Virus record (IMG/VR): IMGVR_UViG_3300028392_000029
Coordinates: 62,001-126,000 of that record
Reading direction: 5' to 3' (one strand)
Length of the DNA stretch: 64,000 nucleotides
Below, piece after piece: positions 3,929 to 64,000 of this stretch; the stretch's first letter is position 1, and every line of letters starts with the position of its first letter. The position numbers and the translations under genes are program-made. The notes under the pieces are model-generated. The model saw only the letters and a list, made by a program, of their open reading frames with translations. It was not told where the DNA came from and did not search any database.

Positions 3929-6900
3929 TTAATTTAATAATAAAAAGTTCATTGCTAGCGGTATTCCATTAATACCTGCTCCTGCTCCGGTGAAGTTCAT
4001 AGTAGCAGGCACTAAAATTTGGACTTGCGTTGTAGTCGAAATTGTATTTCCTGCAATATAAATCACACCTGCCGTTAGTGTATTTACGTTCAAAGCACTA
4101 GAACCGCCACCAATTTGGCTACTAATGTATGATTTAATAGCTTTTTGCGTTGGTACAACGTTGTCACTATTGGCTGTAAAATACGGGTCTGTTGAGAACT
4201 GCGTAATAGTTGCATTACTAGAACCCAACGATATAGAACCCAGTGTTAATGAGTTCAATCCAGCTAAGTTAAACGCATCGGCGTTAATACTTGCTACACC
4301 AGTTGCCTGTTGAACGCTGAATAATGTACCAACTTGGAAGTTACCGTCCTGGTCTGTACTTGTATAGAACACACGACCGCCACCGTTCCCTACTGTTTGT
4401 AGAGTTGGGTTGGCTGCTTGTAAAGGTGTACCCGGGTAATTAGTTGTGGTTTGATTACCAGTACCGATACTTAAGAAGTCGTGTCCTGTTAAACGTACCT
4501 GACTATATTTCAATTTTAGTGTCATTGCTGAGCCATGCACTGGTGCATTAGCTGATGTAAATGATGGACTAATTTGGAATACCGCAGTATAAGGTGCAAG
4601 GCCAGGGCCTGTTCCTAACAAGTTAGATACCTGTACTAGTTTATAGTATGATCCGTTACCTGCAATTTGAATATTTGCGCCGGCTGTTGGAGTAACATAC
4701 AATCCAGATATGTTAATATAGGATGTAGTTTGATATGAATCAGCGTATCCGTTACCCGAAACAGTAGCAGTACCAGTTGCGTACTGCAATCCTCTATTAG
4801 TCCACATTGGGTTTGCAATAGCACCTACACCTACTCGGGTACTTTGCGTTGCTGGACTAGTTTGATTAGGATCAGTAATTGTAAGCAACGGGGCACTTGA
4901 ATACCCGCTACCTGGCTCAATCAGTCGGTATTCGCTAATTGCTCCTGCACTTACTTTACAACGTAGTGTTGCTGTTGCTCCTGTGACAATCTTATTAAAG
5001 ATTGTAGTATTCAACGAGCATGCAACCCACAACGGAACTGAACTAGGGTTACCAAATGCAATAGCAGGCCATGATGCAACTGATGTTAAGTTTTGTACAA
5101 CCCAATTAATGCCGTCATTTGATGCAGACACTTGAGTGGCAGCACCTGCCGTTGAAGTCCAGCCACCTGCACCACTGACTAGTGTGAATGAAGAGCCAGT
5201 GGATGTTTGTGAAACCTGTAACTGATTTGTACCAGAGAATACCTGTTGAACATAATAGGTACTTGTGGATACCAAATTACCGAAGAATGTACCGCATGCA
5301 GTGGACCAAGAATCACCAGTACTTGTAGTTATTGGTACAGGAGCTGTTCCAAAAGTTGAGCCAACTGTAACATAATTAGAGCCAACTGTTAAAATGTAAT
5401 AAGGTACGCCAGTAATCAGTCCAGAACTAACAACGTTAATATTCATAGTACCAGTACCGCCGGCCCATGATGTGAAAGCAGTTCCAGTTCCGGCACCGCC
5501 TGAGTAGGTAGCTACTGTTACACTATTAGTACTTGCACTATTTACATAGTATAGTGTGTTGGCTGTTGGGCCGCCAAATACAGTACCACTACCGTTGGTA
5601 AAATAAATCATAGAACCGACACTAATACCCAAAGCTGACACAGTCTGTGTAGTAGTGATTACACCGTTATTTACACCAACTGCGGTTACCTGCCCAGTGG
5701 TTGCCACAGGACCGCCTAAACTTACACCTGCGCCTGCCGCCCAAGCACCTGCCCCGAGTGCCCATGTTACTGCTGAACCGCCATAGCTAGTAGCTACTGT
5801 GATCACACCAGTGCCTGTGTTATTAGTCAACACATAATAAGTTTGTGTTCCGGATACTATGCCGCCTAATACTCCACCTGCAACTGAAGTCCATGCTCCT
5901 GCTGCCGCTGTGGTTAAGTTTAGAGTCGAGCCGCCTACAGTAGCAGAAATTTGTATAGTACTAGAACCGCTGTTAACTTGGGTAATATAGTAGGTAGTTC
6001 CAGCTGTGACTGAACTGAATGTTTGTCCAGTTGTTACGTTCCAGCTACCCACACCGTTGATTAAACTTACTGGATTTGAACCGTAGTTAGCACCTAATGT
6101 GAGTGTACTTGAAGTTGGAATTGTCAAGATATAATATGTGCTACCGCTAACTAATCCGCCTAAGGCAGCGCCTGCTGTGATTGCCACAGTTCCGCTTGCG
6201 TTAATTAACACAAACGGAGCTCCGCCCGGTGTAGCACTGATTGTAATAAATGTACTGTTAATTGTTAAAATGTAGTAGGTTGCACTGTTAGCCAAGTTAC
6301 CAAATGCACCTGATGATCCTGTAGCAAATGATTGCCCAACTACCATGTTACTGTTACTAGCAACTGTTACAATATAACTTGTACCAGTGATAGTAGTTGT
6401 GCTGACGTTGGTTGTTTGTGAAGAACTCACAGCCCACTGACTACCAGCACTAGTTCCGTTACCGCTAATGTTAGCAACAACGTATGTTCCAGCAGTTACA
6501 CCAGAACCACTCAGTGCCATACCGATTACAACAATACCACTTGATACTGTACCAACTGTTAGAATGCCACTAGTGATACTACTATTAGCCATCACGGCAC
6601 TTGTTGTTGTTGTTTGAGTGGCTGTTGTACTTGCTGTAACCGCGGTAGAAGTATAAGTTTCACCAACAACCATGCCAGTCGTAGAACCAACTGTTACAGA
6701 ACTTAGTGTGCCAGTAATTGTGGTGCTGGTCTGGGTAGTAGTTGTGTTGGTTTGCCAAGTAGATCCACTACCACTACCTAATAAGTTACCGGTAATGTAG
6801 ACACTTGCGCCAATACTTCCGCCAGTTAGTACCATACCAATTGATAAGCTGCCAGCTGTTAGTGTGCCTACAGTTAAAATACCAGTTGCACCAATAGTGC

Positions 6901-9900
6901 TACCAGTCATAGTTGCTGTTGCAGATGTTGTTGCTGTTGCTGTTGTAGTTTGAGTAACTGCTGTAAACACAATAGATTGGTTTACAACTAAATTGCTTGT
7001 GCTACTAACTGTTAACAAGTTTGTACCCGTAGCGGCTGCAAGTAATACAGGATTAAATGTAGCGGCTGTGAACACAACAGGTTCGCCCACATCAAATGTT
7101 GATGAGTTAGCAAGCGTAATGCTTGTGCCTGCCGCAGTAGAAACCACAGTACTTGCTGTTTGTGTCGATGTAGTAACAAAACTTTCTCCAGGTACTAAGC
7201 CAGCAACACTAGATAGTGTTATTGAATTTAGTGTACCAGTTGCCGCAAATGATGCAACTGTTCCAGGAGTTGTACTTAGGTTATATGTACCAGCTCCGCC
7301 TGTGCCTGTTCCTAACGAAGTAATGTAAGTGCCAGCTGGTATGCTTGCACTACCTGTTACTACCATACCAACGGCCCATGTACCAGATATTGTGCCGCCA
7401 ACTGTTAACACGCTAGTTGCAATAGTGCTTGCACTACCAGTAGCTGTAGCATTTGTTGTAGCTGTAGCTGTAGGAGTTTGTGTAACTGCTGTTGGAATAA
7501 ATGTTTCGCCAGCAACAACACCAGTAGTAGAACTTACTGTGATTAAATTGTTTACGCCAACAAATGCCTGAGGACTTCCAGTTGTGCCAACGTTGTTAGT
7601 AATGCTTACGTTGTAGGTACCCACACCGCCTGTGCCAGTTCCTAATGATGAAATATAAGTACCGTTTTGTGTTCCGCCGCCGCTAAGGTTCATACCAAGT
7701 GCAATTGTTCCTACTACTGAACCTGTTACTGTTAGAACTGTGCCTGTTGTTCCACTTGTACCTGTTACTGCACTGATATATCCCGAAAATGTTGCAGTAA
7801 TACTTGTAGTTGCTGTAATATTTTGATTTTGCGAAGCAGGAGCTGCCAAGAATAAACCTTGACCATACTTAACTCTACTCCAAGGCAAGTTAACTCCCAT
7901 ACCTGCACCTGAACTCTTCCAAGTAATGCCATCAATACTGTAAGCTGTGGCAGTTGTTGATGCCGCTACAGCTACAAATATGTTTTTACCGTATGTTACA
8001 CTGGTCCAGTTTTGTGAACTTGGTAATGTTCTAGCAGTCCATGTTGTGCCATCTGCACTTGATGCTGCCGCTGTTGAGCCTGCTACACCGCCTGAAATAG
8101 CAACCCAGATTGTACCACCGTATGCTACACCGCTCCAGTTTGCACCGGATGGCAGGGCATTGGTATTAGTCCAGTTTTGTCCAACTGTGCTGTAAGCCGC
8201 ATTAGCACTGCCTGATGCAACTGCCATAAATCTGCCGTTACCGTAGGCAATTGCGCTCCAGTTTGCTGTGGCTGGCATTGCACTACTCGCTTGCCATGTT
8301 AATGGTGTTGTAGCGTAGTTTGAAAGCGTGCCGCCTTTGGCAATAGCAACCCATACTCCGGCACCGTATGCAATAGCAGTCCATGTTGTACTAGATGAAA
8401 GTGTACCGCCTGTAGTCCATGATGTACCATCGCTACTATATTGTGTTGCATTACCATTAGAAGTGATAGCAACATAATAACCACCTGAACCTACACCGGT
8501 ATAGGTAAAGTTAGTAATTGCGCCAGTACCAGTGTTTACATTTGTAATTGTAACTACTAGGTTGTTGGCCGGTGTAACACCTCCTAAACTTGTACCAGGA
8601 ATAGTAATAGTGTTACCGATAGTGTATAATGTTCCGCCGGTTGTAATTGTAATTGCATAAGCAACACCTGTTCGAACAATGCTGAATGTTGCTCCAGAAC
8701 CACTGCTTAATGTTCCAGTTCCTAGTCCAATAGTTCCAGATACAGAGTTGTATGTAACTGTAGTATCACCGTAGGCAACATCAGCCCAACCTGCAGAATT
8801 AAGTACTTGAGTTCCAATTGATGGAACAAATCCCGGAGCACTAGCAACCACTCGTGGTTCAATAATATATGTCGTTGTTAAATCTAAGTTAGTAGCATTG
8901 GTAGTTCCGGGAACTACGTGATCCCATCCTGCGGCATTGATCGTCATAGTACCGCTACCTGATGTTAATACTACAGGTGATGAACTTCCGCTTGCTGACG
9001 CTACTGAGAATGTTGTACCGTTACTTGAAAGACTAGCACCAATAACATAATAAACTGTAGTCAATGGTGTGATGTTGCCGCCTCCAAATGTACTTGCACC
9101 GCTAAAATATATCGGCATGTTGGCATACAAAGTGCTTGTATTAGTTGTTGTAGTAAACACTGAAGTTGTACAACTGTTTACCACTATTGTGGTAAAACTT
9201 TCTTTAGCAACGTTAGCTAGTTTAGTACCTGAGTTATAATTAACAATATAACCAGCTTGTCCGTTACCTGTACCGCCTGTTAGCAATATTCTCATACCAA
9301 TATATGCCGCACTAATGGCACTATCTGTAGCTGCCAAGTTGATCTGATATAACGTACCAGCTTGGGCCACATTTGATTGTGTTACATAGTTTGCACCGCC
9401 AGTTAGTGGTCGTGTTTCAAATACTGCATTATCTCGGAATTCGTTAGCAACAACTGTGGCATTGTATCCAGTACCACCAATAGACCATGTAGCTGTATTA
9501 TAACCTGAACCGGCATTAGAAAATTCCATGCGGTAGATAGCATTTGTACTATCAGTAAACACGTTAGAGACAGTTGCTTGACCTGAACGGTTGTTAATCG
9601 CGGCAGTTACTGCAACTTCATAAGTATCGCCTCCTTCAGCTAGTGTACCGTATGTACCATATGAGCTGTTACCGTTTGTGGCACGCATACGTCCACCTAG
9701 TTCTGCTAGGTATCCAGCATAGCCGTAATAACAGAACACTGAAACTAGCTCAGTTAATGAACTTGAACCAGTACACCATACGCCAATACCGTCGCTTAGA
9801 ATTGTTGTATAGTCGTTAGCAACAATACTTCTGTTACCGCCAGCGTGTAGTGCTCCGTCAATCTTCATACCAACACAACCATAACCAAACATAGTACAGT

Positions 9901-35823: not shown

Positions 35824-38643
35824 TTAGGCTAATGCTCTACTACCAGCGGGTCTAGAGGTAGACTTTGCAGTCTTTTGGCTAGCTTCTGAGGTAGTGGCGG
35901 CATGACTTATCATTTGTCCCATTTGTTTATTTAACATTATTAGCTGGTCATTGAGATCTTTTATAGATACTGCACTACTACCAGTTGCCGTAGGCAATGC
36001 CGCGGGCACACTAGAAACTTTTGGTTGTTCAACCGGTTTTTCTGCTTGTTCTATTTTAGGAACTGGTTTAGCCACTGGCGGTGCAGTTACTGGCTTGGCT
36101 ATGTCAGTGTTAATATTATCTAATTTTGGCATTGCTGGCGCAGTTATTGCACTAGTCTTAGGTAACATACTTGTTATCTGAGTTTTTATACGATCAAATA
36201 TACTTGGTTCTGCTTTAGGTGCCTCAACTTTAGGTATATCTAACTTAGGAATATCGACTTTAGGTGCCTCAACTTTAGGTATATCTAACTTAGGTGCTTC
36301 GACTTTAGGTACTATCTTAGGAATATCAACTTTAGGTGCTTCAACCTTAGGTACTTCAACTTTAGGTATATCTAACTTAGGTGGTTCTACCTTAGGTGTT
36401 TCAGCTTTAGGTAGTTCAACTTTAGGAATATCTACCTTAGGTGGTTCTGCTTTAGGTGGTTCAACTTTAGTTTCTTCGGACTTAGATTCTACTTTAGGTG
36501 GTTCAACTTTAGTTTCTTCGGGCTTAGATTCTACTTTAGGTGGTTCAACTTTAGGAGCTTCTACTTTAGGTGGTTCTACTTTTATATCAGTCTTAGGTGG
36601 TTGAACTTTAGGTGTAGCATCAGCCACTTGTTGCTTTAATTGAGCCATTACATCTTCCTTAGTTGAACCAGCTTTAGGTAGTTCAACTTTAGGAATATCT
36701 AACTTAGGTAATTCAGCTTTAGGTGCTTCTGTTTTGGCCGCTGACGCTCTTGCTTTGATATCTTCTTGTAGTTTTAGTGCTTCTTGATAGAAAGGACTGC
36801 CTTTACCTTGATTACGTTGACCAGGACCTTCTGCAAGAGTTTTTAATTGTTCTTCGCTTAGTTTAGGCAACTCTGGAGGTTTAACTTCGGGAACTTTTAT
36901 TCCGCCCTTAGGCAACATGTCAGTAAGCATGTTCTTACTAGTATCTGCCGCAGGTTTAGGCATTTGTTTAGCGGCACGCTCTTGCATGTCTTGCATAAAC
37001 GTTTTAACCTGTGCTTTAGGAACTACAGCCTCATCGCCATGTAGATTAACAGCAGTTTCCGTACCAAAGTTCTCAAACCAGTTACCAGTTGCTTCTTTAG
37101 ATCCGCCGGCACGACCTGGTTTGGGCTTACCTATTTCACGATTACCTACTGCTGATGCACCTGCCGCAGTAGGTGCGGCTGACGGTGCCCCGGCTTTGTT
37201 TATACCAGTAAGATCTCCTAGTAATTTAAAATCTGCTTTTAATTTTGCAGCCGCTGCCTCAGTAGTACCACCTTTGCCAAACACTTCTGACATAGCACTA
37301 TCAAATTTCTTAATTGAAGCCGCATCGCCTCCAATCTTTGCTGCCGTATCTGCTAGTGCTCCTGTACCTGCGGTACTTTGAACTCTTGCTTTTTCTTCTG
37401 TTCGTGATAATGCTTGATCAACTCCTCGTCTAGCATCTTGAGTTACTTTACCATCAGCACCTTTTACAAGGCCCTGTCCTTGTAGATCAACTTTATCTCT
37501 GTTTGCTTGATCTGCTTTTGTTCCAACCATTCCAGTTTCAGCTTTTGCACCTACTTGGCGCCCAGCTGTTCTATTTTCTTCAGCAATCTTTGACATTGCC
37601 GCTCCCATCTCCGGAGTAGAACGATTAACCATATTTTGAAAACGTTGGCTAGATTGAAATTCGTTAACGTGCGACTTAGCTTTTTCTAATGCTTGCTCAG
37701 CGGCTTCTTTTTGTTCCTTAGTTTTAGCATGTGTTAGTGCGTAAGTTGCACGTTGAAATTCGCCAGCCGCCGGACCCATTGCCATCAGTGCTGTTACGTT
37801 ATCTTTGGTATATCGGCCACCTTTAGCAATTGTATCGCTTAGATCACCTACGCTTTTACCCATGCCAAGCAGTGCAACTTGCGCTGAAACATACCCTTCA
37901 CGCTGTTGTTCTGACATGCGTCGCATCATCATAACAGTGCCGGGTTCTTTTAATCTTTCTTCAAGAGCCGCAGTTAGTGCCTGGTGCGTTTGCCCAGTAA
38001 CCATTGACGTGCGATGTAAATTAGTAGCTAGTTCGCCAGCAAACTGGCTGGCTTTTTCCATTGCTTTAGGATTATCAAGATTTGCCTTAGCACCATACTG
38101 ACTAACAATTGCTAAGTTTCCTAACTCAGCCGCAGCCATGTTAGTTTTTTCTTTAAGATTTTTACCTAAATCACCTTCTTGTAAACTATTTCCAAGTTTT
38201 AATAACTTTTCAGCCGATCCAGTTGCATTACCACTTACCGCATCTAGCGCAATTCCTGAATTGTTTACTGCTTGTAAATATTGTGCTTGGCTTAGTCCAG
38301 CTTTATTAGCCTTGTCTTGCATGTCAAGAAAACTCATTGACACGCCTTGCTGAGCATTAATTAAAGTACCGGTTCGTAATCCATCTAATTCGCCAATAGC
38401 TTTGCCGGCGGCGCCGCCTAGCCCTGGAATAACACTAGACATTCTCTGTAGAGCAGTAGCCGCATGGTTACCGTTAGTTGTAATGCTAGTAAATGCTGTA
38501 ACTACGCCTGCTGAGGATCTAAGGATATCTCCTAAACCAGCACCCGTGCCGCCGGCACCACTAGCTCCCGATCCGCCTGAATTACCTTTACCACCGTTGG
38601 CTTCTCTAAGTGCGTCAATAAGGTCTTGTTTAGTTAATTCCAT
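35824..38643 (-). CDS. Tape-measure / baseplate hub (gp29-position)-like protein with Pro-Lys-Val-Glu repeat tract
   Basis: Ala/Gly-rich helical N-half, LHGDEAVVP motif seen in tape-measure-type proteins, head-to-head with the gp26-like gene. Confidence 0.55.
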   Translation of the reverse strand: MELTKQDLIDALREANGGKGNSGGSGASGAGGTGAGLGDILRSSAGVVTAFTSITTNGNHAATALQRMSSVIPGLGGAAGKAIGELDGLRTGTLINAQQGVSMSFLDMQDKANKAGLSQAQYLQAVNNSGIALDAVSGNATGSAEKLLKLGNSLQEGDLGKNLKEKTNMAAAELGNLAIVSQYGAKANLDNPKAMEKASQFAGELATNLHRTSMVTGQTHQALTAALEERLKEPGTVMMMRRMSEQQREGYVSAQVALLGMGKSVGDLSDTIAKGGRYTKDNVTALMAMGPAAGEFQRATYALTHAKTKEQKEAAEQALEKAKSHVNEFQSSQRFQNMVNRSTPEMGAAMSKIAEENRTAGRQVGAKAETGMVGTKADQANRDKVDLQGQGLVKGADGKVTQDARRGVDQALSRTEEKARVQSTAGTGALADTAAKIGGDAASIKKFDSAMSEVFGKGGTTEAAAAKLKADFKLLGDLTGINKAGAPSAAPTAAGASAVGNREIGKPKPGRAGGSKEATGNWFENFGTETAVNLHGDEAVVPKAQVKTFMQDMQERAAKQMPKPAADTSKNMLTDMLPKGGIKVPEVKPPELPKLSEEQLKTLAEGPGQRNQGKGSPFYQEALKLQEDIKARASAAKTEAPKAELPKLDIPKVELPKAGSTKEDVMAQLKQQVADATPKVQPPKTDIKVEPPKVEAPKVEPPKVESKPEETKVEPPKVESKSEETKVEPPKAEPPKVDIPKVELPKAETPKVEPPKLDIPKVEVPKVEAPKVDIPKIVPKVEAPKLDIPKVEAPKVDIPKLDIPKVEAPKAEPSIFDRIKTQITSMLPKTSAITAPAMPKLDNINTDIAKPVTAPPVAKPVPKIEQAEKPVEQPKVSSVPAALPTATGSSAVSIKDLNDQLIMLNKQMGQMISHAATTSEASQKTAKSTSRPAGSRALA
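36200..36720. repeat. Degenerate 15-nt (PKVE/PKLD-type pentapeptide) tandem repeats including a 42-bp near-perfect duplication
   Basis: tttaggtggttcaactttagtttcttcgg[a/g]cttagattctac at 36451-36492 and 36493-36534; many (c/t)ttagg units. Confidence 0.85.
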
Positions 38644-38670
38644 ATAAAAAAATCCCCAGAAATATGCGTA

Positions 38671-38694
38671 TATAAATACTGTATCATATATTTA
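38671..38694. promoter_or_regulatory. Opposed late promoter boxes in a divergent intergenic region
   Basis: TATAAATA on + at 38671-38678 (T4 late consensus) and TAAATA on - at 38689-38694. Confidence 0.7.
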
Positions 38695-38707
38695 TCAGGA
38701 GTAAAAT

Positions 38708-39529
38708 ATGGCAAATAATCCTCTGCAACAGTATTTTAGACAACCTAAGATCTTTGTTAGTCTAGCCAGTAAAGGCACCTATAACGAACCAGGATCGCTA
38801 ACTGGCAATCTTGAAAGCATGCCAATATTTGGTATGACAGGCATGGACGAAATCGTTATTCGAACTCCTGATGCTTTGTTAAGCGGTGAAAGCACTGTAA
38901 AGGTACTAGAAAGTTGTTGCCCTAGTATCAAGAACGGATGGGATATTAGCACTCTTGATACCAACTTATTGTTTACTGCTATTAGAATTGCCACTTACGG
39001 AAATATGATGGCTGTTACACACAATTGTCCGGATTGTAATAACGAAAATGACTATGACCTAGATCTAGGCAAAGCTATTGAACACTATTCAACTTGCAAA
39101 TTTGATAATCGTGTGGTTGTAGACAATCTAGTAATTAAAATTAGACCATTAAACTATAAACAAAACACTGATATCAACATTAAAAATTTCCAACTGCAAC
39201 AACAGTTGTCTCAAGTTGAAGCTATCACTGATCCAACTGAGCAACAGAAAAAAATCAACGAATTGTTTGCCGCAATCGGTCTTATTCAAAATGACATGAT
39301 CACAGACTGTGTTGACAGTGTTGAGATTGAAACTACTAACGTTACCGAACGGGGTTACATCAAAGAATGGTTAGAGAATTGCGATAAATCTATTTTTGAT
39401 GCAATTAAAAAACAAATTGAAGAAAATCAAAAAACTTGGTTATTGCCCAACTATAAAGTTAAATGCAAAAAATGTGAAAAAGATAACGAAGTCAGTATAG
39501 AGTTAGATAATTCAAATTTTTTCGCATAA
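38708..39529 (+). CDS. gp26: Baseplate hub assembly chaperone (T4 gp26-like)
   Basis: NPLQQYFRQPK, MTGMDEI, LFTAIRIATYG, CPDC and CKKC Cys pairs, ends ...NFFA. Confidence 0.75.
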   Translation: MANNPLQQYFRQPKIFVSLASKGTYNEPGSLTGNLESMPIFGMTGMDEIVIRTPDALLSGESTVKVLESCCPSIKNGWDISTLDTNLLFTAIRIATYGNMMAVTHNCPDCNNENDYDLDLGKAIEHYSTCKFDNRVVVDNLVIKIRPLNYKQNTDINIKNFQLQQQLSQVEAITDPTEQQKKINELFAAIGLIQNDMITDCVDSVEIETTNVTERGYIKEWLENCDKSIFDAIKKQIEENQKTWLLPNYKVKCKKCEKDNEVSIELDNSNFFA

Positions 39530-39756
39530 GCCTAATTGGTCTCACACCCTATGAGATTGAAGAAAAGCTAGTTAGGCTAGATAACGAAATAAGAGCGTTT
39601 AAATCAGAGCTATTTAGAATCAGCTGGTACATGAGGGGTGGTATTACTGTAAATGATCTAATGTACACCTATAGCTATGACGACCGACTAGCCGCCTACG
39701 AGATCATTAAAGAAAATATTAAGTCAGTTGAAGAAACTGGCCTGCCTCTACTTTAA
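39511..39756 (+). CDS. gp51-like baseplate assembly segment in the -1 frame of gp26-like; probable frameshift extension (not in ORF track)
   Basis: Open frame FKFFRISLIGLTPYEIEEKLVRLDNEIRAFKSELFRISWYMRGGITVNDLMYTYSYDDRLAAYEIIKENIKSVEETGLPLL*; no ATG/GTG/TTG until 39631; slippery T TTT TTC at 39517-39523. Confidence 0.65.
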   Translation, partial: FKFFRISLIGLTPYEIEEKLVRLDNEIRAFKSELFRISWYMRGGITVNDLMYTYSYDDRLAAYEIIKENIKSVEETGLPLL

Positions 39757-40907
39757 TTTAGCTGTGCCTTTAATGCACGTTGTCCAGTTTTAGGATCTTG
39801 CATCCAACCAGTGCCAATATCTTTCCATTGCGCAATTGGACTAGCATTTGGTGCTAGCTTAAATCCACTTAGTAATTCAGGTTGCCCGCTGGCAGGGCCC
39901 GGTTTTGTAGCACTAGGTGTAGCTCCTTGTCCTTGATTAGCTTTAGATGTATCTGCCGGTGTATCATCAGTTTTATCGCCAGTAGTTTTATCAGCCGCAG
40001 GTTTGTCTCCAGTTGGACCTTGCTTAACACTCTTCATAAAATCAGGAGTTAGTGCATCTAATACTTGTACACCCTTAGCACCAATAAAATCTTGAATACC
40101 AAAGAATGATCCTGCCATAGTTTCTGCAATTCCTTTAGCTACATCGCTGTTGTTGAACATAGATAGAGCAACTGTGCCAACTACTTTATTACCTAAACCT
40201 GATACAGCACCGCCTAATTTTTCAGCACCTAACTTGGTAAGGAATCCGCCAAATATTTTTCCAGGGATTTTAGCAATTTTACCTACAGCAAAGTTTGCCA
40301 CCTCTCGACCAATTAGAATCTGCATTTCACGCTGACGATAAGCATTGTACCACTCACCGACATCTGTAAACTGCTCATATCCTGGCGGAATCTTTCCAGA
40401 CTTGACCCATTCTTCAGCATCCGTCATATGATTGTAGTACTCAAGGGCAGGTTGCCATAATTCATAAAGGTATGCGGCATCAAATCCAAGGCTAGCTAAT
40501 TTCTTACCACCTTCTTTGACCATCTCTAATTTACCCATACCAACAATTTTATCCAGGCCAAGCGTTCTGAGTCCACTGTCTGTTTTAGCTTGAGCCAGGA
40601 TCTTTGCATCAAGATCCGGTCTATGTCCTAACTGTTTAGCTGCCTCAGCAGGTGTAACTCCAGTTCTGCGAGCATAGCTGTTTACCTTTGCGGCATCAAT
40701 GGCCGCTTTTTCTTCAGCGGCTTTGGCAATAGTTATATTTCTAGATTTAGCAAAGTCAGCTAATTCTTGAGCACCTTGTTTAATCAAAGGTGTATCTCCT
40801 TTAAGTGCCTTAGCGGCCTTAAAACCAAGACTTCCTATACCACCTAATATATCAGCGGCTAGACCTTCTTGTGTTTGTTGTTCAGAGATTATTTCATAGA
40901 TTTTCAT
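39753..40907 (-). CDS. Hypothetical late protein, possible internal head protein
   Basis: 384 aa; N-terminus MKIYEIISEQ; TAAATA box at 40925-40930. Confidence 0.6.
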   Translation of the reverse strand: MKIYEIISEQQTQEGLAADILGGIGSLGFKAAKALKGDTPLIKQGAQELADFAKSRNITIAKAAEEKAAIDAAKVNSYARRTGVTPAEAAKQLGHRPDLDAKILAQAKTDSGLRTLGLDKIVGMGKLEMVKEGGKKLASLGFDAAYLYELWQPALEYYNHMTDAEEWVKSGKIPPGYEQFTDVGEWYNAYRQREMQILIGREVANFAVGKIAKIPGKIFGGFLTKLGAEKLGGAVSGLGNKVVGTVALSMFNNSDVAKGIAETMAGSFFGIQDFIGAKGVQVLDALTPDFMKSVKQGPTGDKPAADKTTGDKTDDTPADTSKANQGQGATPSATKPGPASGQPELLSGFKLAPNASPIAQWKDIGTGWMQDPKTGQRALKAQLN

Positions 40908-41416: not shown

Positions 41417-41848
41417 TTATTGAGCCTTGAGTATATGTGAACCATGTACACGCACTTGAATATGACCGTTATAATAGTCATTTGATTCTAGTACACGACG
41501 ACTAAATTGTTCACGAGCCTCTACGTATGAGCATTCTGCTTTGGATTTACAGTAAAAAAGTATTTCTCTTGTGAAGTTTGCTGTGCCTAATTCCGCAATA
41601 TCTTTGCTTAGTTCAGGCGACGATCCGTAATATTCACGCCAGTCTGAATCAATTTTACTGCGAATTTTCTTCTTTTTCTTTGTGCCGTTTTTAAGCGTTA
41701 CTGTTTTTGTGGTAGTTTTAGAGAATTTTGCTAATTTTTTGCCTATGTACTTACGTCCAGACAGTGTGTTAGTAATTAGATAAACATATCCTACACAATC
41801 TTCCGGTAACACTTCCACTAGTTGATTTTCATAAGTCCATGACATCAA
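41417..41848 (-). CDS. GIY-YIG endonuclease (T4 EndoII/DenA-like size)
   Basis: GYVYLITN...RKYIGKK, YYGSS, FTREIL, YVEAREQF, YYNGHI motifs; Lys-rich insertion TKTVTLKNGTKKKKKIRSK. Confidence 0.85.
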   Translation of the reverse strand: MMSWTYENQLVEVLPEDCVGYVYLITNTLSGRKYIGKKLAKFSKTTTKTVTLKNGTKKKKKIRSKIDSDWREYYGSSPELSKDIAELGTANFTREILFYCKSKAECSYVEAREQFSRRVLESNDYYNGHIQVRVHGSHILKAQ

Positions 41849-42115
41849 CTAGTTAGCGTTATCATCCCCTTGAGTCTTGCCTTTTTGAGCGGCCCGCCGA
41901 GCTTTACGTTCGTCTAACTGCTGTCTTTTTTCTATTTGCCAGAGCCTAATATCTTTACGTCTATCAGAACATACATTACGTATGTCCGATAGCAAATGCC
42001 TAACGCGAATACTGCTGGCATAGGTAGCTTCATTGAGCCACAGTTGATTCTCTTCGAAGTAAACTCGAAGTAATCGCATCAACTCTGCATGCAGATCTTC
42101 GTCTTGTTCTTTCAC
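41849..42115 (-). CDS. Hypothetical protein (88 aa, helical, basic)
   Basis: ORF overlaps the gp46 stop and abuts the nuclease start. Confidence 0.6.
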   Translation of the reverse strand: MKEQDEDLHAELMRLLRVYFEENQLWLNEATYASSIRVRHLLSDIRNVCSDRRKDIRLWQIEKRQQLDERKARRAAQKGKTQGDDNAN

Positions 42116-43893
42116 TCAGTTATTTCCAAATCATTGGCATAGCTAGTATAGCCATTTTCTTTGATAACTTTTAATACATTGTTCACACGTCCGATAAGTT
42201 CGTCCTTGTGAGAGATTAAGAAAATATTTTTCTTACGTTCACGAGCCATCTTTTTAAGCACTGCCAGTGCGCCCTCAACACCTGCGGCATCTAAGCCGTT
42301 GTCAATCAGTTCATCCACAAACAATAAGTTGATCTGCTGATATAGGCTTTCCCATACATCTCGGAAAGCCCACGACAAGCTCAATATAAGTCTATTGCGT
42401 TCACCTCGACTTAGATTATCAAAATCTAAGTCTTGCCCCAGCTGGGTGATCAGTACCGTAAGATCATTTTGGAATAGAACAGTATGGGGTAATCCCATCT
42501 TGTCTAGATAATAGGTCAAACGGTTGTTCAAATAGGCTAGGTTTTGATCTATGATCTTCTTGCGAATAAACGAATCTTTGCTGGTCAGCAGTTTAAGTAG
42601 GAACTCTTGATGCTCTTTTAAACTGTTAAGTTCGTTAACACCATCCCATACGATTTCTTGCATGGCAGTATTTTTTAATTCATCAATTTGTTCTTGGTAG
42701 GGATCACTTTCTCCGGCCTTAATCTCTAACTGTGTTTCTAGAGTCTTTAAATTATTCTGATGCTTTAGTGCTTCTTCTACAGTATCGTAATAGGTATCAG
42801 GACGTCCGGGCATCTCGCCGATAGCAGATAACTCTTTGTTAACCTTGGCAAGATCTTTTTCAACTTTATCGTGGTAGACGTTAGCTTCTGCTAGATGCTT
42901 AGTAGCATTGGCAGTCATTTCTTCATGCTTATGATCGTGAAGAGTCTGTTCACAGGCATGGCAAGTTTTGTTATCTAAGGTAGCAAGCTCGCTAGCGTAT
43001 TTTTTTACGCTTCGCTCCGCTTGCGCTATCGCGCTTTCTAACGTAGCCCGCTCTTTATTTAAACTAGCTAATTTTTGTTTCTGTTCTAAATATAACTTTA
43101 ATTCAGCATGGGCGGATATCTCCGCAGTGATGTCTACGTTTTCTAGTGCGATAATCGCACGACCGATCTTTTCTATTTCTTGATCATGTTGATTATTCCA
43201 AGCACTTTGTCGAACAATCAATGCATCAATACTTTTTTGTATGCCTTCATTGGCTTTCTTAGTTGCTTCTAGATTAGCACTTTCTTGTAAGATTGAATCT
43301 TTAGTCTGTTTAACTAGTTCTTTAAGAGTTTCTGCTTTTTCACTAAGCAGAGTAATGCCTAGTAACTGTTCAATAATAACTCGTTGGTCATTAGCTCGCA
43401 TACTGAGAAACGGCTCTGTATACGTATTAAGAGCAACAATATGCTTGAACATGTCGTGACTCATACCTAGCAGTTCATCTAAGTCTCGCTGGGTTTCACG
43501 CATATCTCCTTGTGAGTCGTCAGTTTCTTCGCCTTCTTGTTCTTGGTCATTAACAAAGAACTTCATTATAGAAGGTTTGCGTCCACGCTCAATACGATAG
43601 TCAGTCTCGTCTTTTTCGAAAGCTAGAGTAACTAACATGTTTCTATTGTTAATCTTATTAATAAGATTATCTTTTTTAATATTAGTAAGTGCATTACCAA
43701 ATAGTGCAAAACTCAGGGCATTAACAATAGTAGTCTTGCCCGTACCGTTACGACTTCCGTTATCGTCCCCACCTTGATCTAAGTTTTCACCTAGTACAAG
43801 TGTTAAATTTTCCGTGGCAAAGTTTACTGCTTGGGTTTGATTACCCACGCTCATAAAATTCTTAACTGTCAGTTCTTTAAGTTTAATGGTCAT
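42112..43893 (-). CDS. gp46: Recombination endonuclease ATPase subunit (gp46 / SbcC / Rad50-like)
   Basis: Walker A NGTGKT, zinc-hook CHAC within coiled coil, signature LSRGE, Walker B LLFVDE, ISH. Confidence 0.93.
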   Translation of the reverse strand: MTIKLKELTVKNFMSVGNQTQAVNFATENLTLVLGENLDQGGDDNGSRNGTGKTTIVNALSFALFGNALTNIKKDNLINKINNRNMLVTLAFEKDETDYRIERGRKPSIMKFFVNDQEQEGEETDDSQGDMRETQRDLDELLGMSHDMFKHIVALNTYTEPFLSMRANDQRVIIEQLLGITLLSEKAETLKELVKQTKDSILQESANLEATKKANEGIQKSIDALIVRQSAWNNQHDQEIEKIGRAIIALENVDITAEISAHAELKLYLEQKQKLASLNKERATLESAIAQAERSVKKYASELATLDNKTCHACEQTLHDHKHEEMTANATKHLAEANVYHDKVEKDLAKVNKELSAIGEMPGRPDTYYDTVEEALKHQNNLKTLETQLEIKAGESDPYQEQIDELKNTAMQEIVWDGVNELNSLKEHQEFLLKLLTSKDSFIRKKIIDQNLAYLNNRLTYYLDKMGLPHTVLFQNDLTVLITQLGQDLDFDNLSRGERNRLILSLSWAFRDVWESLYQQINLLFVDELIDNGLDAAGVEGALAVLKKMARERKKNIFLISHKDELIGRVNNVLKVIKENGYTSYANDLEITE

Positions 43894-44900
43894 AGGCTAT
43901 TGTAAATTGCTAAAAGTGTATTTTTGTTATACGTGTCGCTGTCAATATTAATAATTTGACTAGACACAATTTGATCTACACTCTCAAACGCTTGTATATC
44001 AATGTTTGTATTAATTTCTAATTCTTTCTTTTCAGCAATTAGTGTAAGTTCGCGGATATCATAATCTGCAATAAACTTCTCTTTAATAAAACTTGCTTCT
44101 TCAAAACTAATATCAATGTCTAAGGTAACACGTAGATGCTGTCTAGGTTTAATAATAGTATCAGCATCATCAATCAATTGACTTAGTTTAACAGTACGGA
44201 ATGTAGGTTGGCCAGGCCAACTATGATATTGGGGAGTGCCATCCCAGGCTAAGACCATCATACCACGCTCATCATCCCATGCATCTGCATAGTTATGTGG
44301 AAATGCATTTCCGATATAGATCATGTTTTTTTGTTGCTGACGCTTATGGAAATGTCCGCTAAATCCCAGCTCATATTTTTCAAAAGCATCAAGTTGTATT
44401 TCACCGTGATCAGGCATCTGTATCATAGCGTTCATAAAGAAGCTGGGCAATTCAAAGTGACCAAATATATACTTGCCACCTTTCTTGCCTACAGTCTTCC
44501 ACTCGTCCCCTACAAGCCACGGGCAGAGTGTAACGTCCCCAATGGTAGTCGGTTCGTGGACCACTGTAATACCTGGAATATATTTTCCAAACTCGACAGA
44601 GTGTATATCCCGCTTGTCTTTGTAATACAGATCATGATTACCAGGGAAAAAATAAAATTGATCGAACGCCTGACCCAGCTTTTCCAAGGCCCTAAGGCTA
44701 TAGTCCATAGTAGTGATATTAAGACTATTACGATTGTGATGCCAATCACCCATAAAAATTCCAACATCGCAACCTTCCTCCTTGGCTTTTGCAATGTACC
44801 AATCTACAAATTCTTCACAGTCTTGATTATGTACTGAGCTGTTGGATTTTAATCCAAAATGGATATCGGTAAAACATGCTACTTTTTTAAATAAGCTCAT
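43890..44900 (-). CDS. gp47: Recombination endonuclease nuclease subunit (gp47 / SbcD / Mre11-like)
   Basis: Metallophosphoesterase motifs DIHFG, GDWHH, GNHD, GHFH. Confidence 0.93.
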   Translation of the reverse strand: MSLFKKVACFTDIHFGLKSNSSVHNQDCEEFVDWYIAKAKEEGCDVGIFMGDWHHNRNSLNITTMDYSLRALEKLGQAFDQFYFFPGNHDLYYKDKRDIHSVEFGKYIPGITVVHEPTTIGDVTLCPWLVGDEWKTVGKKGGKYIFGHFELPSFFMNAMIQMPDHGEIQLDAFEKYELGFSGHFHKRQQQKNMIYIGNAFPHNYADAWDDERGMMVLAWDGTPQYHSWPGQPTFRTVKLSQLIDDADTIIKPRQHLRVTLDIDISFEEASFIKEKFIADYDIRELTLIAEKKELEINTNIDIQAFESVDQIVSSQIINIDSDTYNKNTLLAIYNSL

Positions 44901-61100: not shown

Positions 61101-64000
61101 TGGGTAACCTTTGAGAAAAATAGTTGGAATGTATATAGATATACTGACATTAATTTAGTAGTTACTAATGTAACATATGATAAAACTTTAAAAATTTTAA
61201 CAATAACAGCACAGGATATTGTCAACCTAAAAGTTGGTTCGTATATTGGACTAGCCCAGATTTCGATATTACAGGGATTTTATAAAATTGAAACTGTCAC
61301 GTTGAATTCATTTACAGTATCTGCAAATATTACTGGATTCCCAGTACCGACATTTACACAATCAGCTGAGTTGGTAGTATATGCACTAAAATCTCAGCGG
61401 GTTGACTCAATTGATTCCATAGATACTGCTTTACCTAATGTAATTAATAACGGCGAGCTAGTATGGACTGACAAAAATTTTAATGACTTATGGACAGTTT
61501 GGAAGTATGGAACAGTATATCAACAGTCGTTAATTAATAATTTTAACCCTCAAGATAATTTAGAATACGGATTAACTGTTGCGATGAATAAAGCAGGTAA
61601 CATATCTGCAGTTGGAACAGCAATCGGACAAATTATTACTTATGACAAAGCGTCCCCAAAATCACCTTGGATACAACGTCAGGTGATTCTGCCTCCGTTT
61701 ATTGCCCGAGCTAATCTAAATTTAATTAGTGATATAGCTAGGGTGGTTGGATTTTCCCCTGACGGATCGTACATGGCAATCGGTAGCCCATTTGCAGGAT
61801 CTGCATCTCATAATTTTGTAGGAGCATGGGTGTCGGGTACAATTTACGGTCCTAATCTAATAGTTTCTATAGATCCGTTATCTAACGGAAATATACAATT
61901 TTATAAAGCAATGGCTATAACCTCAGATAGCCCGCTGAACAGTTATAAATGGAAAAGAATACCATACATCACCGTTTCACAGGCAGGTAGTTGGTCGCAA
62001 TATGATTCATATCCGGTGGGCGCACTTGTTACCTACAATGATGTACAGTATCGTGCTATACTTCCAACTTTTGGTAACACAACTGTCATTATTACAGCAA
62101 TAGACGGATTTACTGGACGATTAACAACAACATCGACAGCAAGTCTTGAGCCCGGACGACTTTTAAAATTTGAAAGCACTGGAGCATTTGGAGGAATTAT
62201 CCCAACACAAAACTATTATGTGTTAAGCATAGATAATAGCACTCAATTTACAATTACTGATACGTACAACGGCACTAATTTTGTTTTATTAACATCGGGT
62301 AAAGGTCGCATGACGGTTACACAAGAGGCCCCTAGTGCCCCATCCGCTGGTGTATCATCATGGACAAGAGTAAAAGATCAAATTGGACCTTCAGCACACG
62401 GAGTAGTGTCTTTATATTCTAAAGACACAAATAATATCTATACATTAGTTGATACAATTATCAGCCCTAACATCACAGCTAACGAGCAATTTGGATCAAC
62501 TATTACATTTGGTAATAACAACTTGTTCATTGGAGCTGTTGGAAACAATAACAATACAGGCGCAGTTTATGGCTTAGTCTATACAGAGTTTTTAGAAGCT
62601 ACTACAGGCTACAATCCAGTTGGTAGTAGTTTTAGTACAATTGTTGTAAGTTCAACAGTGGGAATCCGAGAAGGTATGTATGTTCGAGGAATTGGATTTA
62701 CCGGAGACCAGCAAGTTGAAGCTGTTATTAATTCAGTAACTTTAGTGCTAACTGGTAGTCCTAATTCTACACCTAGCGGCACACTAAACTTTATTTCTAT
62801 AGGTTGGAGATACCAACCCGTACTGCCGATTACTGGAACAGTTGCAGGTAGCAACTTTGGAAGCAGTATTGCAGTTAGCGGGGACAACTCGGTACTGGCT
62901 ATTGCGGCAGCAGGCGGCACAGTTGGCGGCTCAGTAACTGTATTTTTTAATATAAATGAAGTTGCAGGGTCTCAGCAATTAATCAGTAATTCCGACATAA
63001 ATTTTGGACAAAGTATTTCTTTGTCTGACTCTTCAGAATATTTGATTATCTCAGATGACAGTGCTAGTAAAATATTACGTCCGCAAATTGGAAATGTATA
63101 CATTTACAAATTTAATGGTATTAATTACGGAACTACTCCGTACCAGACATTAGTTGATCACCACCCTGAACCAAATGGCAGGTTTGGAAATAAAGTTTCG
63201 TTCATGAATGATTACAAAACTATAGTCGTTTATAGTTTATATGGCGATACCGCTAATGCTATGACATTTAATACAGGAGGTGTTACGACATTTGACAAAA
63301 ATTCAACGACTTTCTCAACTAAAAATTCTGATAGCGGTAGAATAGATATCTATGACAATTATTTTACTAAATGGGTGTTTAGTGAAAGTTTAGCCACAAC
63401 AAATCAGTCATCTGACGGATTTGGAACAGGATTTGCTGTAGGTAACGATCATGTGTTTGTTAGCGCACCAAATGCTGTAGATTATGATAATTTACAACAA
63501 CCATATATTTCTGGCAGAGTATATTATTATGGTAAACAGCCTAATACTCATACTTGGGAAACATACAAACAAGAAATTGAAAAACCTAATATTAGCAGAG
63601 TTAAAAAAGCATTTTTGTATAACAGAACTACGAACCAACTAATCAGATATTTAGATGTAGTTGACCCTGCCCAGGGCAAAATTCCCGGGCCAGCTGAAGA
63701 AGAAATTAAATTTAAAACATTTTATGATCCAGCCCATTATTCAGTTGGAGATGATAGAGTCAATATAGATGCAAGATCTGCCTGGTCAAAAGACCAAGTA
63801 GGTACATTATGGTGGGACTTGCGGACTGCAAAGTTTATTGATAGTTACTCAAGCGATGTTGTATACAGAAATAGTACTTGGAATTCTTTAGCAATTGGAG
63901 CCAGTATTGATATCTACGAGTGGGTATCGACTACTAATTTGCCATCTGCCTGGGACAAAATAGCTGATACTGGTGCCGGAGTGGCCTTAGGTATCAGCGG
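55119..64000 (+). CDS. Very large baseplate/virion structural protein (>2960 aa, gp7-position), partial; absent from the ORF track because it has no stop in the window
   Basis: GGAG RBS and ATG at 55119: MVDNVNPNGSNSGLTLNLLPAFYRTEANKKFLQATLDQ...; same frame gives coherent protein at spot checks (58383 YDRSNSFTYNY, 60603 YQKRRYL, 62481 NEQFGSTITFG, 63963 ADTGAGVALGIS). Confidence 0.8.
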   Translation, partial: MVDNVNPNGSNSGLTLNLLPAFYRTEANKKFLQATLDQLYQPGSIKKTNGYIGRENAKSSTGSDIFVEASDSTRQNYQLEPALTVTDSIGNVTFFKDYIDYINQLNVFGANTSNHARLNKQEFYSWDPHIDWDKFVNFQNYYWLPYGPDLITIYGQQLAIESTYTVTLESELNNNQYLFTPNGFTRNPVLRLFRGQTYTFEINSPGNPFSFKTARSLGIADRYEIPTLSDHAVTNGTITFTIPSDAPSLLYYQSESDLNLGGVIAIYNITEDTFINVTDEILGKKQYKLANGTQLSNGMKLAFGGNVSPDMYMSGKYYVDGVGTSIRLIPETILEITSPYTTVTDILFDSDAFDTEPFDNASGFANTLDYIVINRASRDYNPWSRYNRWFHKDVINASSAFNNAIANLDQKYRAIRPIIEFNADLKLFNYGTVALDDIDLVDDFTTDVFSTIEGTFGYNIDSTALQEGHRILFTADTDILVKNKIFEVRFIDIQHINGVKQIHLVEIIEPIENHVVLVRQGKINQGQSYWFNGTAWKLAQKKTVTNQPPLFDIVDSNKISYGNTEVYNGSTFTGTSIFSYKKGKGVTDPSLGFPLAYQNVSNIGDIVFNFNLATDAFEYKKTTAIISQKINVGYLVTQDYAGNVVYENGWKRSVVNTLQAAVRLYKNSNKTNNFNLDIFDDVNNLEDLVVQVFVNGKRLDWPQWSIKSESDYKQIVLKTDISLTDVLTLKAYAAQPINSKGYYEIPISLQNNPLNDEINEFTLGEVIDHVNSIVDNLGKIFVGVFPGESNLRDLGNLSEFGTKFVQHSGPSSLSLYHITSPQNNIVQALELSRDEYSNFKRNLIAVAESLGVDADSRTLVDIILLQITKDTPKTHPYYFSDMLPFGASLITNLNVVDYRIKLYPLTNSFNLEKLSPSAVGVYLNNTQLIHGRDYTFVSQNFINVSAPLVNGDIITTYEYESTDACFVPETPTKLGIWPKYEPKLYLDTSYVTPRWMIQGHDGSQVLAYGTYGDSGHSDYRDGILLEFEKRIYNNIKINYDISICDFAKIIPSYNRTNDYSIDEFNKVLAPSFYKWTGLVGVDFTKPLSYDRSNSFTYNYAGHSSPDGRNVPGYWRGIYRWMLDTDRPNLCPWEMLGFSIEPKWWTTLYGPSPYTNDNRPMWQDIADGMVREPGKPAVYLSDYAKPFLMDHIPVDENGNIVSPAISGLASGVFTVSTDNNFVFGDVSPVESAWRRSSHYPFSVVLASILLTPAQSFGALLDRSRIVRNIAGQLINSDTGLRIRPADVVLPSIYSSTTRVQTAGIINYIVDYILHFTFSNNLKSYNMYRTELKTLLPKLSYRVGSFTNKEQFNLLLDSKTPLSAGSVFIPKEDYDIILNTSSTVRKITYSGVIITKLQTGFEVKGYSITQPYFKYYRYIKTGAKINIGGISETYSTWTAYQQYGAGTNVRYNNVYYRVQSTHTAAATFNPAYYQALPDLPIVGGANAALRSVWDRTESIDVPYGTLFSSIQDVVDFLLGYGEWLKDQGFIFDEFNAKLGTVSNWESSAKEFLFWTTQNWSASTTKWQDWTPTISVPYGNIIRYNGDYYSALFNVPPSEIFDTNLYTKLAGLSDIGSSVLSVSPSASKLVFNAPLTVVEDINNPFNGYEIFKVDGTPLSSIFLDSYRNGNLVSYTTKTTDGIYCASFYLVQLEHVAILNNNTIFNDTLYNPGTGYRQERIKLAGYITSGWYGGLDIPGFIFDQAKIQEWEPWKDYALGDTVSYQSFYYSATAFIAGALVFKASLWTKLTEKPTPKLLPNWTNIATQFTDFYSLDDDNFSSTQQKVAHHLIGYQKRRYLGNIIKDDVSEFKFYQGMVREKGTLNVLKKLFDVLSSENKESLVFYEEWALRVGQYGASNSFENIEFVLDEALFRNNPQGYLLLNQQDPTLNVFINQQTPNSVYLKPLNYNSSPWPALPTYNQYFRDAGYVDSADVFLTLGSLSDITSQDITTFSNGAYIWVTFEKNSWNVYRYTDINLVVTNVTYDKTLKILTITAQDIVNLKVGSYIGLAQISILQGFYKIETVTLNSFTVSANITGFPVPTFTQSAELVVYALKSQRVDSIDSIDTALPNVINNGELVWTDKNFNDLWTVWKYGTVYQQSLINNFNPQDNLEYGLTVAMNKAGNISAVGTAIGQIITYDKASPKSPWIQRQVILPPFIARANLNLISDIARVVGFSPDGSYMAIGSPFAGSASHNFVGAWVSGTIYGPNLIVSIDPLSNGNIQFYKAMAITSDSPLNSYKWKRIPYITVSQAGSWSQYDSYPVGALVTYNDVQYRAILPTFGNTTVIITAIDGFTGRLTTTSTASLEPGRLLKFESTGAFGGIIPTQNYYVLSIDNSTQFTITDTYNGTNFVLLTSGKGRMTVTQEAPSAPSAGVSSWTRVKDQIGPSAHGVVSLYSKDTNNIYTLVDTIISPNITANEQFGSTITFGNNNLFIGAVGNNNNTGAVYGLVYTEFLEATTGYNPVGSSFSTIVVSSTVGIREGMYVRGIGFTGDQQVEAVINSVTLVLTGSPNSTPSGTLNFISIGWRYQPVLPITGTVAGSNFGSSIAVSGDNSVLAIAAAGGTVGGSVTVFFNINEVAGSQQLISNSDINFGQSISLSDSSEYLIISDDSASKILRPQIGNVYIYKFNGINYGTTPYQTLVDHHPEPNGRFGNKVSFMNDYKTIVVYSLYGDTANAMTFNTGGVTTFDKNSTTFSTKNSDSGRIDIYDNYFTKWVFSESLATTNQSSDGFGTGFAVGNDHVFVSAPNAVDYDNLQQPYISGRVYYYGKQPNTHTWETYKQEIEKPNISRVKKAFLYNRTTNQLIRYLDVVDPAQGKIPGPAEEEIKFKTFYDPAHYSVGDDRVNIDARSAWSKDQVGTLWWDLRTAKFIDSYSSDVVYRNSTWNSLAIGASIDIYEWVSTTNLPSAWDKIADTGAGVALGIS

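Follow-up and report, generated by a model that had tools for sequence, protein, structure and literature searches.

A T4-like phage very probably produces a short and a long form of its baseplate-hub assembly protein (gp26 and gp26-gp51) by a programmed -1 ribosomal frameshift. The evidence is comparative. We propose that a fraction of the ribosomes translating the gp26-like gene slip back one base on the sequence U_UUU_UUC (39517-39523), where they are paused by a stem-loop starting 6 nt downstream, and then read 77 more codons in the -1 frame. This would yield a 349-aa gp26-extension protein beside the 273-aa gp26-like protein, which stops two codons after the slip site. The same type of signal was found in T4-like phages outside the subfamily of T4, whereas T4 itself possesses two separate genes, which would explain why T4 seemed to lack the frameshift of other long-tailed phages. 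No report linking gp26 or gp51 to frameshifting was found among open-access papers and preprints.

The analysed sequence, hereafter the window, is a 64,000-nucleotide stretch (positions 62,001 to 126,000) of the IMG/VR record IMGVR_UViG_3300028392_000029, a freshwater T4-like phage contig of 165 kb estimated to be about 45% complete. A 223-kb IMG/VR contig was 100% identical over the gp26-like protein. The gp26-like gene (38708..39529, plus strand) encodes a 273-aa protein belonging to PF12322 T4_baseplate (E 3.7e-17, 63.2 bits against a cut-off of 24.5) and to phrog_150 "baseplate hub" (E 1.8e-18). It is preceded by the sequence TATAAATA (38671..38678, plus strand), which appears to match the T4 late-promoter consensus, and by an AGGAG ribosome-binding site (38697..38701, plus strand) located 6 nt before the ATG. 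The last zero-frame codons are GAT AAT TCA AAT TTT TTC GCA TAA, with the stop at 39527-39529. The heptamer T_TTT_TTC (39517..39523, plus strand) is in the X_XXY_YYZ register, so that TTT would sit in the P site and TTC in the A site. The -1 frame is closed by a TAA at 39508-39510, and is then open from 39511 to the TAA at 39754-39756. Its first ATG/GTG/TTG is the ATG at 39631, corresponding to codon 41 of that frame, and nothing comparable to the gp26 ribosome-binding site precedes the -1 frame. A slip would add to 272 residues the 77 codons of the extension (39523..39756, plus strand, stop included; RISLIGLTPYE...GLPLL), giving 349 aa. No alternative genetic code was needed. In the first-pass annotation, which had predicted this frameshift from the sequence alone together with the junction peptide ..DNSNFFRISLIGLTPYE, every element of the observation was correct except the placement of the stimulatory stem.

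The signal was conserved in related loci. Of 1521 homologues of the gp26-like protein, the 120 best (52-94% identical) all ended in (N/S/T)FF followed by 1-3 residues. Eighty related viral contigs were fetched, 64 of them distinct around the site, with a gp26 51-60% identical to that of the window apart from four near relatives at 90-97% (51-100% over the 64 distinct loci). In every one, TTTTTTC followed by G was present in the same register, the zero-frame stop followed 1 or 3 codons later, and the -1 frame continued for exactly 77 codons in 77 of 78 complete loci. Elsewhere in these genes Phe is encoded by TTT 84% of the time and by TTC 16% of the time, whereas at the site it was TTT then TTC in 64 of 64 loci. 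The preceding codon was AAT (48 loci), AGT (14) or ACT (2), never a synonym ending in another base. It should be noted that the FF dipeptide is also conserved at the protein level, T4 included, and that part of the nucleotide conservation is therefore ordinary coding constraint. In 15 of 64 loci a -1-frame stop was located immediately 5' of the heptamer, and the only place where the frames can be joined is therefore the heptamer itself.

The extension was well conserved from its first residue, an invariant Arg, with the consensus RxSLIxL..EI.E.LVRLD.E.K.FK.ELFRISWYMRGGVTVNDLL..YS.EDR...Y.IIKENIE.TK.T.MPLL. In codons 6-36, upstream of the only conserved ATG (codon 37), the variation by codon position was 0.87/0.53/1.12, which is a coding pattern. 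Thirty-three of the 64 distinct loci had no ATG/GTG/TTG in codons 1-36, and 59 of 64 had no ATG. Where a start-like codon occurred its position varied (7, 12, 15, 16, 24, 25, 28, 30, 31 or 33). A conserved independent start with its ribosome-binding site, which the first-pass annotation had named as the observation that would contradict the frameshift, was thus not observed in the homologues.

The RNA structure was investigated with RNAalifold on 60 sequences. A single stem of 10 pairs was predicted between alignment columns 14-23 and 52-61, corresponding in the window to 39530-39539 paired with 39568-39577 (39530..39577, plus strand), with a 28-nt loop and a 6-nt spacer after the heptamer. 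Four pairs showed changes on both sides (AU to GC, UA to CG or AU, GC to AU, and GC to UG). In total, 95.7% of the cells were paired, against at most 56% when the 3' partner was slid by 1-3 columns, and none of 500 column shuffles reached the observed covariation. The arm nucleotides were more constant than the residues they encode: the first arm reads NGC CTR, where the residue is Ser, Arg, Gly or Cys, and the second reads RGG CTN, where the residue is Arg or Gly. However, both arms lie in conserved codons, and some of the pairing could be a by-product of the protein sequence. In the window the stem extends to 39529-39540 with 39567-39578 (-16.8 kcal/mol, z -2.2), and starts 5-6 nt after the heptamer. 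The G-U-rich hairpin at 39536-39560, placed by the first-pass annotation about 12 nt downstream, is an inner, non-conserved element.

The signal is far older than this clade. A blastn search with positions 38000-40500 against named phages found nothing, but at the protein level the closest cultured relatives were jumbo T4-like phages, with a gp26 21-32% identical. The nine phages examined (Atu_ph07, RaK2, 121Q, PA5oct, Phosso, Xoo-sp13, Vibrio 2.275.O, CBB and SCTP-2) all had an in-register T_TTT_TTY at the FF and a -1 ORF of 70-80 codons. The same in-register signal was present in cyanophages S-PM2 and P-SSM2, pelagiphage HTVC008M and vibriophage KVP40, in which the -1 ORF is the gene annotated "gp51 baseplate hub assembly catalyst" and read-through gives FFRISM or FFRIML, against FFRISL in the window. 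With Aeh1, this makes 14 of 14 named T4-like phages tested outside Tevenvirinae. Stem-loops of unrelated sequence followed the heptamer within about 2-9 nt in six of the ten named phages folded, namely Atu_ph07 (-33.4 kcal/mol, z -6.7), PA5oct (-14.5), Aeh1 (-20.2), S-PM2 (-17.9), P-SSM2 (-18.8) and KVP40 (-23.6). In 121Q the stem was located further downstream (-18.1, z -2.4), HTVC008M folded only weakly (-9.9), and RaK2 showed no convincing structure (-9.5, z -0.5).

Previous work noted that the gp51 of cyanophages and vibriophage lacks the first ~200 residues, and that gp51 is "missing only in Aeh1" (Sullivan et al. 2010, PMC3037559). In that paper these ORFs are discussed as independent short genes and frameshifting is not mentioned. 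The frameshift model predicts a hidden gp51 in Aeh1, and it is there: an unannotated 166-nt gap after gp26 holds a -1-frame ORF following T_TTT_TTC, whose first ATG/GTG/TTG is codon 19 and which matches phrog_634 at E 1.1e-13. Under this model, the "gp51" gene of cyanophage, pelagiphage, vibriophage and jumbo-phage genomes would be the 3' part of a trans-frame gene.

The designation of the window's own extension as gp51-like, proposed in the first-pass annotation, is right by position but weak by sequence. The equivalent -1 ORF of S-PM2, P-SSM2, HTVC008M, KVP40 and Aeh1 matched phrog_634 at E 1e-13 to 1e-28, as did the tail of T4 gp51. In cyanophages and KVP40 these ORFs, 45-57 aa as annotated, occupy the same place directly after gp26 and have nearly the same junction. 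In contrast, the 77-aa extension of the window gave no PHROG hit even at E 10 and no match in the Pfam copy searched, which lacks the corresponding newer family PF28602. No Pfam family is on record for the called downstream ORFs. The extension aligned to gp51 tails only at hhalign E 0.004-0.01 (4-8% probability), although in the same register each time, and hhalign against T4 gp26 or gp51 as single sequences was uninformative.

In T4, gp26 (208 aa) ends ..KEFFELL*, at the position equivalent to ..NFFA* in the window, but the FF is encoded TTC TTT and gene 25 follows. T4 gp51 (249 aa) is composed of PF12322 over residues 1-201 and a 48-aa tail, which is the architecture of the predicted frameshift product. 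This tail matched phrog_634 and the C-terminal part of phrog_150, as the short gp51s do, and in an alignment the T4 sequence ..DVFKLLVNPDEI.. lay over ..(F)FRISMFYNNLE... T4 possesses two divergent PF12322 genes and no slippery site, whereas each of the nine complete genomes with the signal that were searched (S-PM2, P-SSM2, HTVC008M, KVP40, RaK2, Aeh1, Atu_ph07, PA5oct and 121Q) has one. A profile of the window-type extension was then searched against 1.84 billion protein representatives, and 273 relatives were found. At least 17 of the best 150 were protein clusters of 319-351 aa carrying the extension at the C-terminus, in frame, after a PF12322 domain, with the junction ..LDFSxxFRxKLI... 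On two contigs, L103 and L104, such a long gene was directly preceded by a short PF12322 paralogue of 294-300 aa. A short and a long form are therefore provided in three ways, by the predicted frameshifting, by tandem duplication, and by the divergent pair of T4. This argues that both forms are needed, as with lambda G and GT, and frameshifting and gene duplication appear here as alternative ways to fix the ratio of two products.

Other explanations were considered and appear unlikely. The downstream frame could be an independent small gene, translated from its own start or by termination-reinitiation at the gp26 stop, the T-run being then just the codons of a conserved FF motif. Indeed small ORFs of 41-71 aa are annotated there, sometimes from an ATG close to the stop, and FF is conserved even in T4, which has no slippery site. 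In S-PM2, P-SSM2, KVP40 and 121Q an ATG lies within 5 codons of the slip site, and termination-reinitiation could contribute to expression in those phages. This hypothesis, however, cannot explain the synonymous positions of the heptamer frozen against codon bias, the coding constraint upstream of any start, or the absence of ATG/GTG/TTG in the first 18 codons of the Aeh1 gp51 ORF. It also has to face the lack of a start codon for 40 codons in the window, the lack of a ribosome-binding site, and the existence of in-frame fusions with the same F-R-x-K-L junction.

Transcriptional slippage, by which the RNA polymerase would add one U at the T6 run, would give exactly the same protein, and two relatives, HTVC008M and Xoo-sp13, have T7 rather than T6. 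It is nevertheless also unlikely, as the run is only 6 T and of fixed length, when productive slippage probably requires 8-9 or more in most cases. In addition, the invariant codon register and 3' C matter for tRNA re-pairing and not for polymerase slippage, and the conserved stem lies at the spacing typical of ribosomal frameshifting. One contig from a lake RNA library covered 39502-39641 with an unchanged T6, but this is weak evidence since contigs hide minor variants and DNA carry-over is possible. Finally, homopolymers are error-prone and in-frame fused versions exist in a sister lineage, but a sequencing or assembly error, or a pseudogenised fusion gene, is very improbable. The same T6C and frame relation appeared in 64 distinct assemblies from many samples and in 14 finished phage genomes from different laboratories and platforms, and independent DNA runs reproduced the stretch without indels.

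We propose that the two forms act as short and long assembly factors for the baseplate hub and the tape-measure protein. These would be the roles that T4 divides between the two paralogous genes gp26 (domain only) and gp51 (the same domain plus a C-terminal tail), and lambda between gpG and gpGT (Levin, Hendrix and Casjens 1993; Xu, Hendrix and Duda 2004, as summarised in PMC5009743). As in lambda, a short product and a C-terminally extended -1 product would be made from one gene, a heptamer is followed by a structure, the zero-frame stop comes just after the slip site, and the gene lies beside the probable tape-measure gene. The slippery sequence, U_UUU_UUC, differs, and so does the protein family (PF12322). 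Membership in the G/GT protein family is not supported, although no gpG-type chaperone was compared directly and the presence of solved chaperone structures in the libraries searched was not ascertained. A PDB sequence search gave nothing for gp26 and only chance coiled-coil hits for the extension. A high-confidence AlphaFold model of a natural fusion (pLDDT 94.3) showed a mixed alpha/beta domain followed by a helical extension, with no Foldseek hit at E 0.001 or better and only generic helical-hairpin matches with Z below 8 by VIA-align. The proposed resemblance to G/GT is therefore one of mode of action and not of membership.

It is possible, and in our view somewhat more likely than not, that an ancient programmed -1 frameshift (U_UUU_UUC plus a stem-loop) links gp26 to the gp51 tail across the T4-like lineages tested: cyanophages, a pelagiphage, KVP40, Aeh1 and RaK2-type jumbo phages. 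T4 and its close relatives, and independently a metagenomic lineage, would have replaced it by gene duplication into a short and a long paralogue. This hypothesis implies that T4 gp26 and gp51 are the missing counterpart of lambda G/GT, hard-wired as two genes, and that the statement that G-T frameshifting is conserved in long-tailed phages "except T4" (PMC5009743) reflects a secondary loss.

The assignment of the neighbouring ORF 35824..38643 (minus strand, 939 aa) as the tape measure, also suggested in the first-pass annotation, is reasonable but, like the G/GT analogy, rests on inference from synteny and one PHROG match. This ORF matched phrog_33360, tail length tape measure, at E 1.9e-14. 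A tail-tube gene was looked for in the window's own incomplete record, in which there was no phrog_45 hit and only a sub-threshold PF06841 hit outside the window. In the window the probable tape-measure gene is divergent from the gp26-like gene, not downstream. It sits between the portal gene and gp26, as does the large ORF of RaK2, 121Q and PA5oct, in the same position as RaK2 ORF088, annotated as similar to a tape-measure protein, and a PA5oct protein annotated as structural with the note ESI-MS/MS. In HTVC008M, the order tube / gp26 / gp51 / small ORF / tape measure lies on one strand, following the V-G-GT-H logic of lambda, and KVP40 and Aeh1 have a tube-like gene, gp26, gp51 and then a large unassigned ORF in the same order.

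In the Aeromonas phage Aeh1 (NC_005260; record positions 118834-119007, minus strand), an unannotated 166-nt gap after gp26 was found to hold a -1-frame homologue of the gp51 tail (phrog_634, E 1.1e-13), the first ATG/GTG/TTG of which is codon 19. The published comparison (PMC3037559) lists gp51 as missing in this phage. In phage T4, gene 25 starts on the last base of the gene 26 stop codon (positions 2303-2305 of the T4 record L085, minus strand), so that it lies in the -1 frame relative to gene 26. This is the frame relation that the gp51 ORF has in other phages, but here there is no slippery site.

A different organization was observed in metagenomic phages, represented by the contigs L103 (positions 820-2744) and L104 (positions 5097-6990), which carry two PF12322 genes in tandem: a short one that has lost the CxxC pairs, and a long one with the extension in frame. 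The short gene in L103 still has T_TTT_TTC at its FF, but the -1 frame closes after one codon, and this looks like a relic of the frameshift site. The -1 extensions of the RaK2-type phages (extension ORFs of RaK2 and 121Q) form their own PHROG of unknown function, phrog_18291. This PHROG was built from ORFs called at internal starts, and it probably represents only part of a trans-frame protein.

In the window, the gp26-like gene is preceded by TATAAATA (positions 38671-38678), which appears to correspond to the T4 late-promoter consensus, and by AGGAG (positions 38697-38701), both situated in the 64-nt divergent intergenic region shared with the tape-measure gene. On the other side, a 384-aa ORF (positions 39753-40907, minus strand) converges on the extension and overlaps its stop by 4 nt. 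This ORF matches no PHROG or Pfam family, and relatives have a 453-485-aa ORF at the same place. A GIY-YIG/SegE-like homing endonuclease ORF (positions 41417-41848, minus strand; phrog_447, phrog_7363) sits beside the gp46/gp47-like recombination nuclease genes (positions 42112-43893 and 43890-44900), and the same arrangement is seen in the relatives L086-L088.
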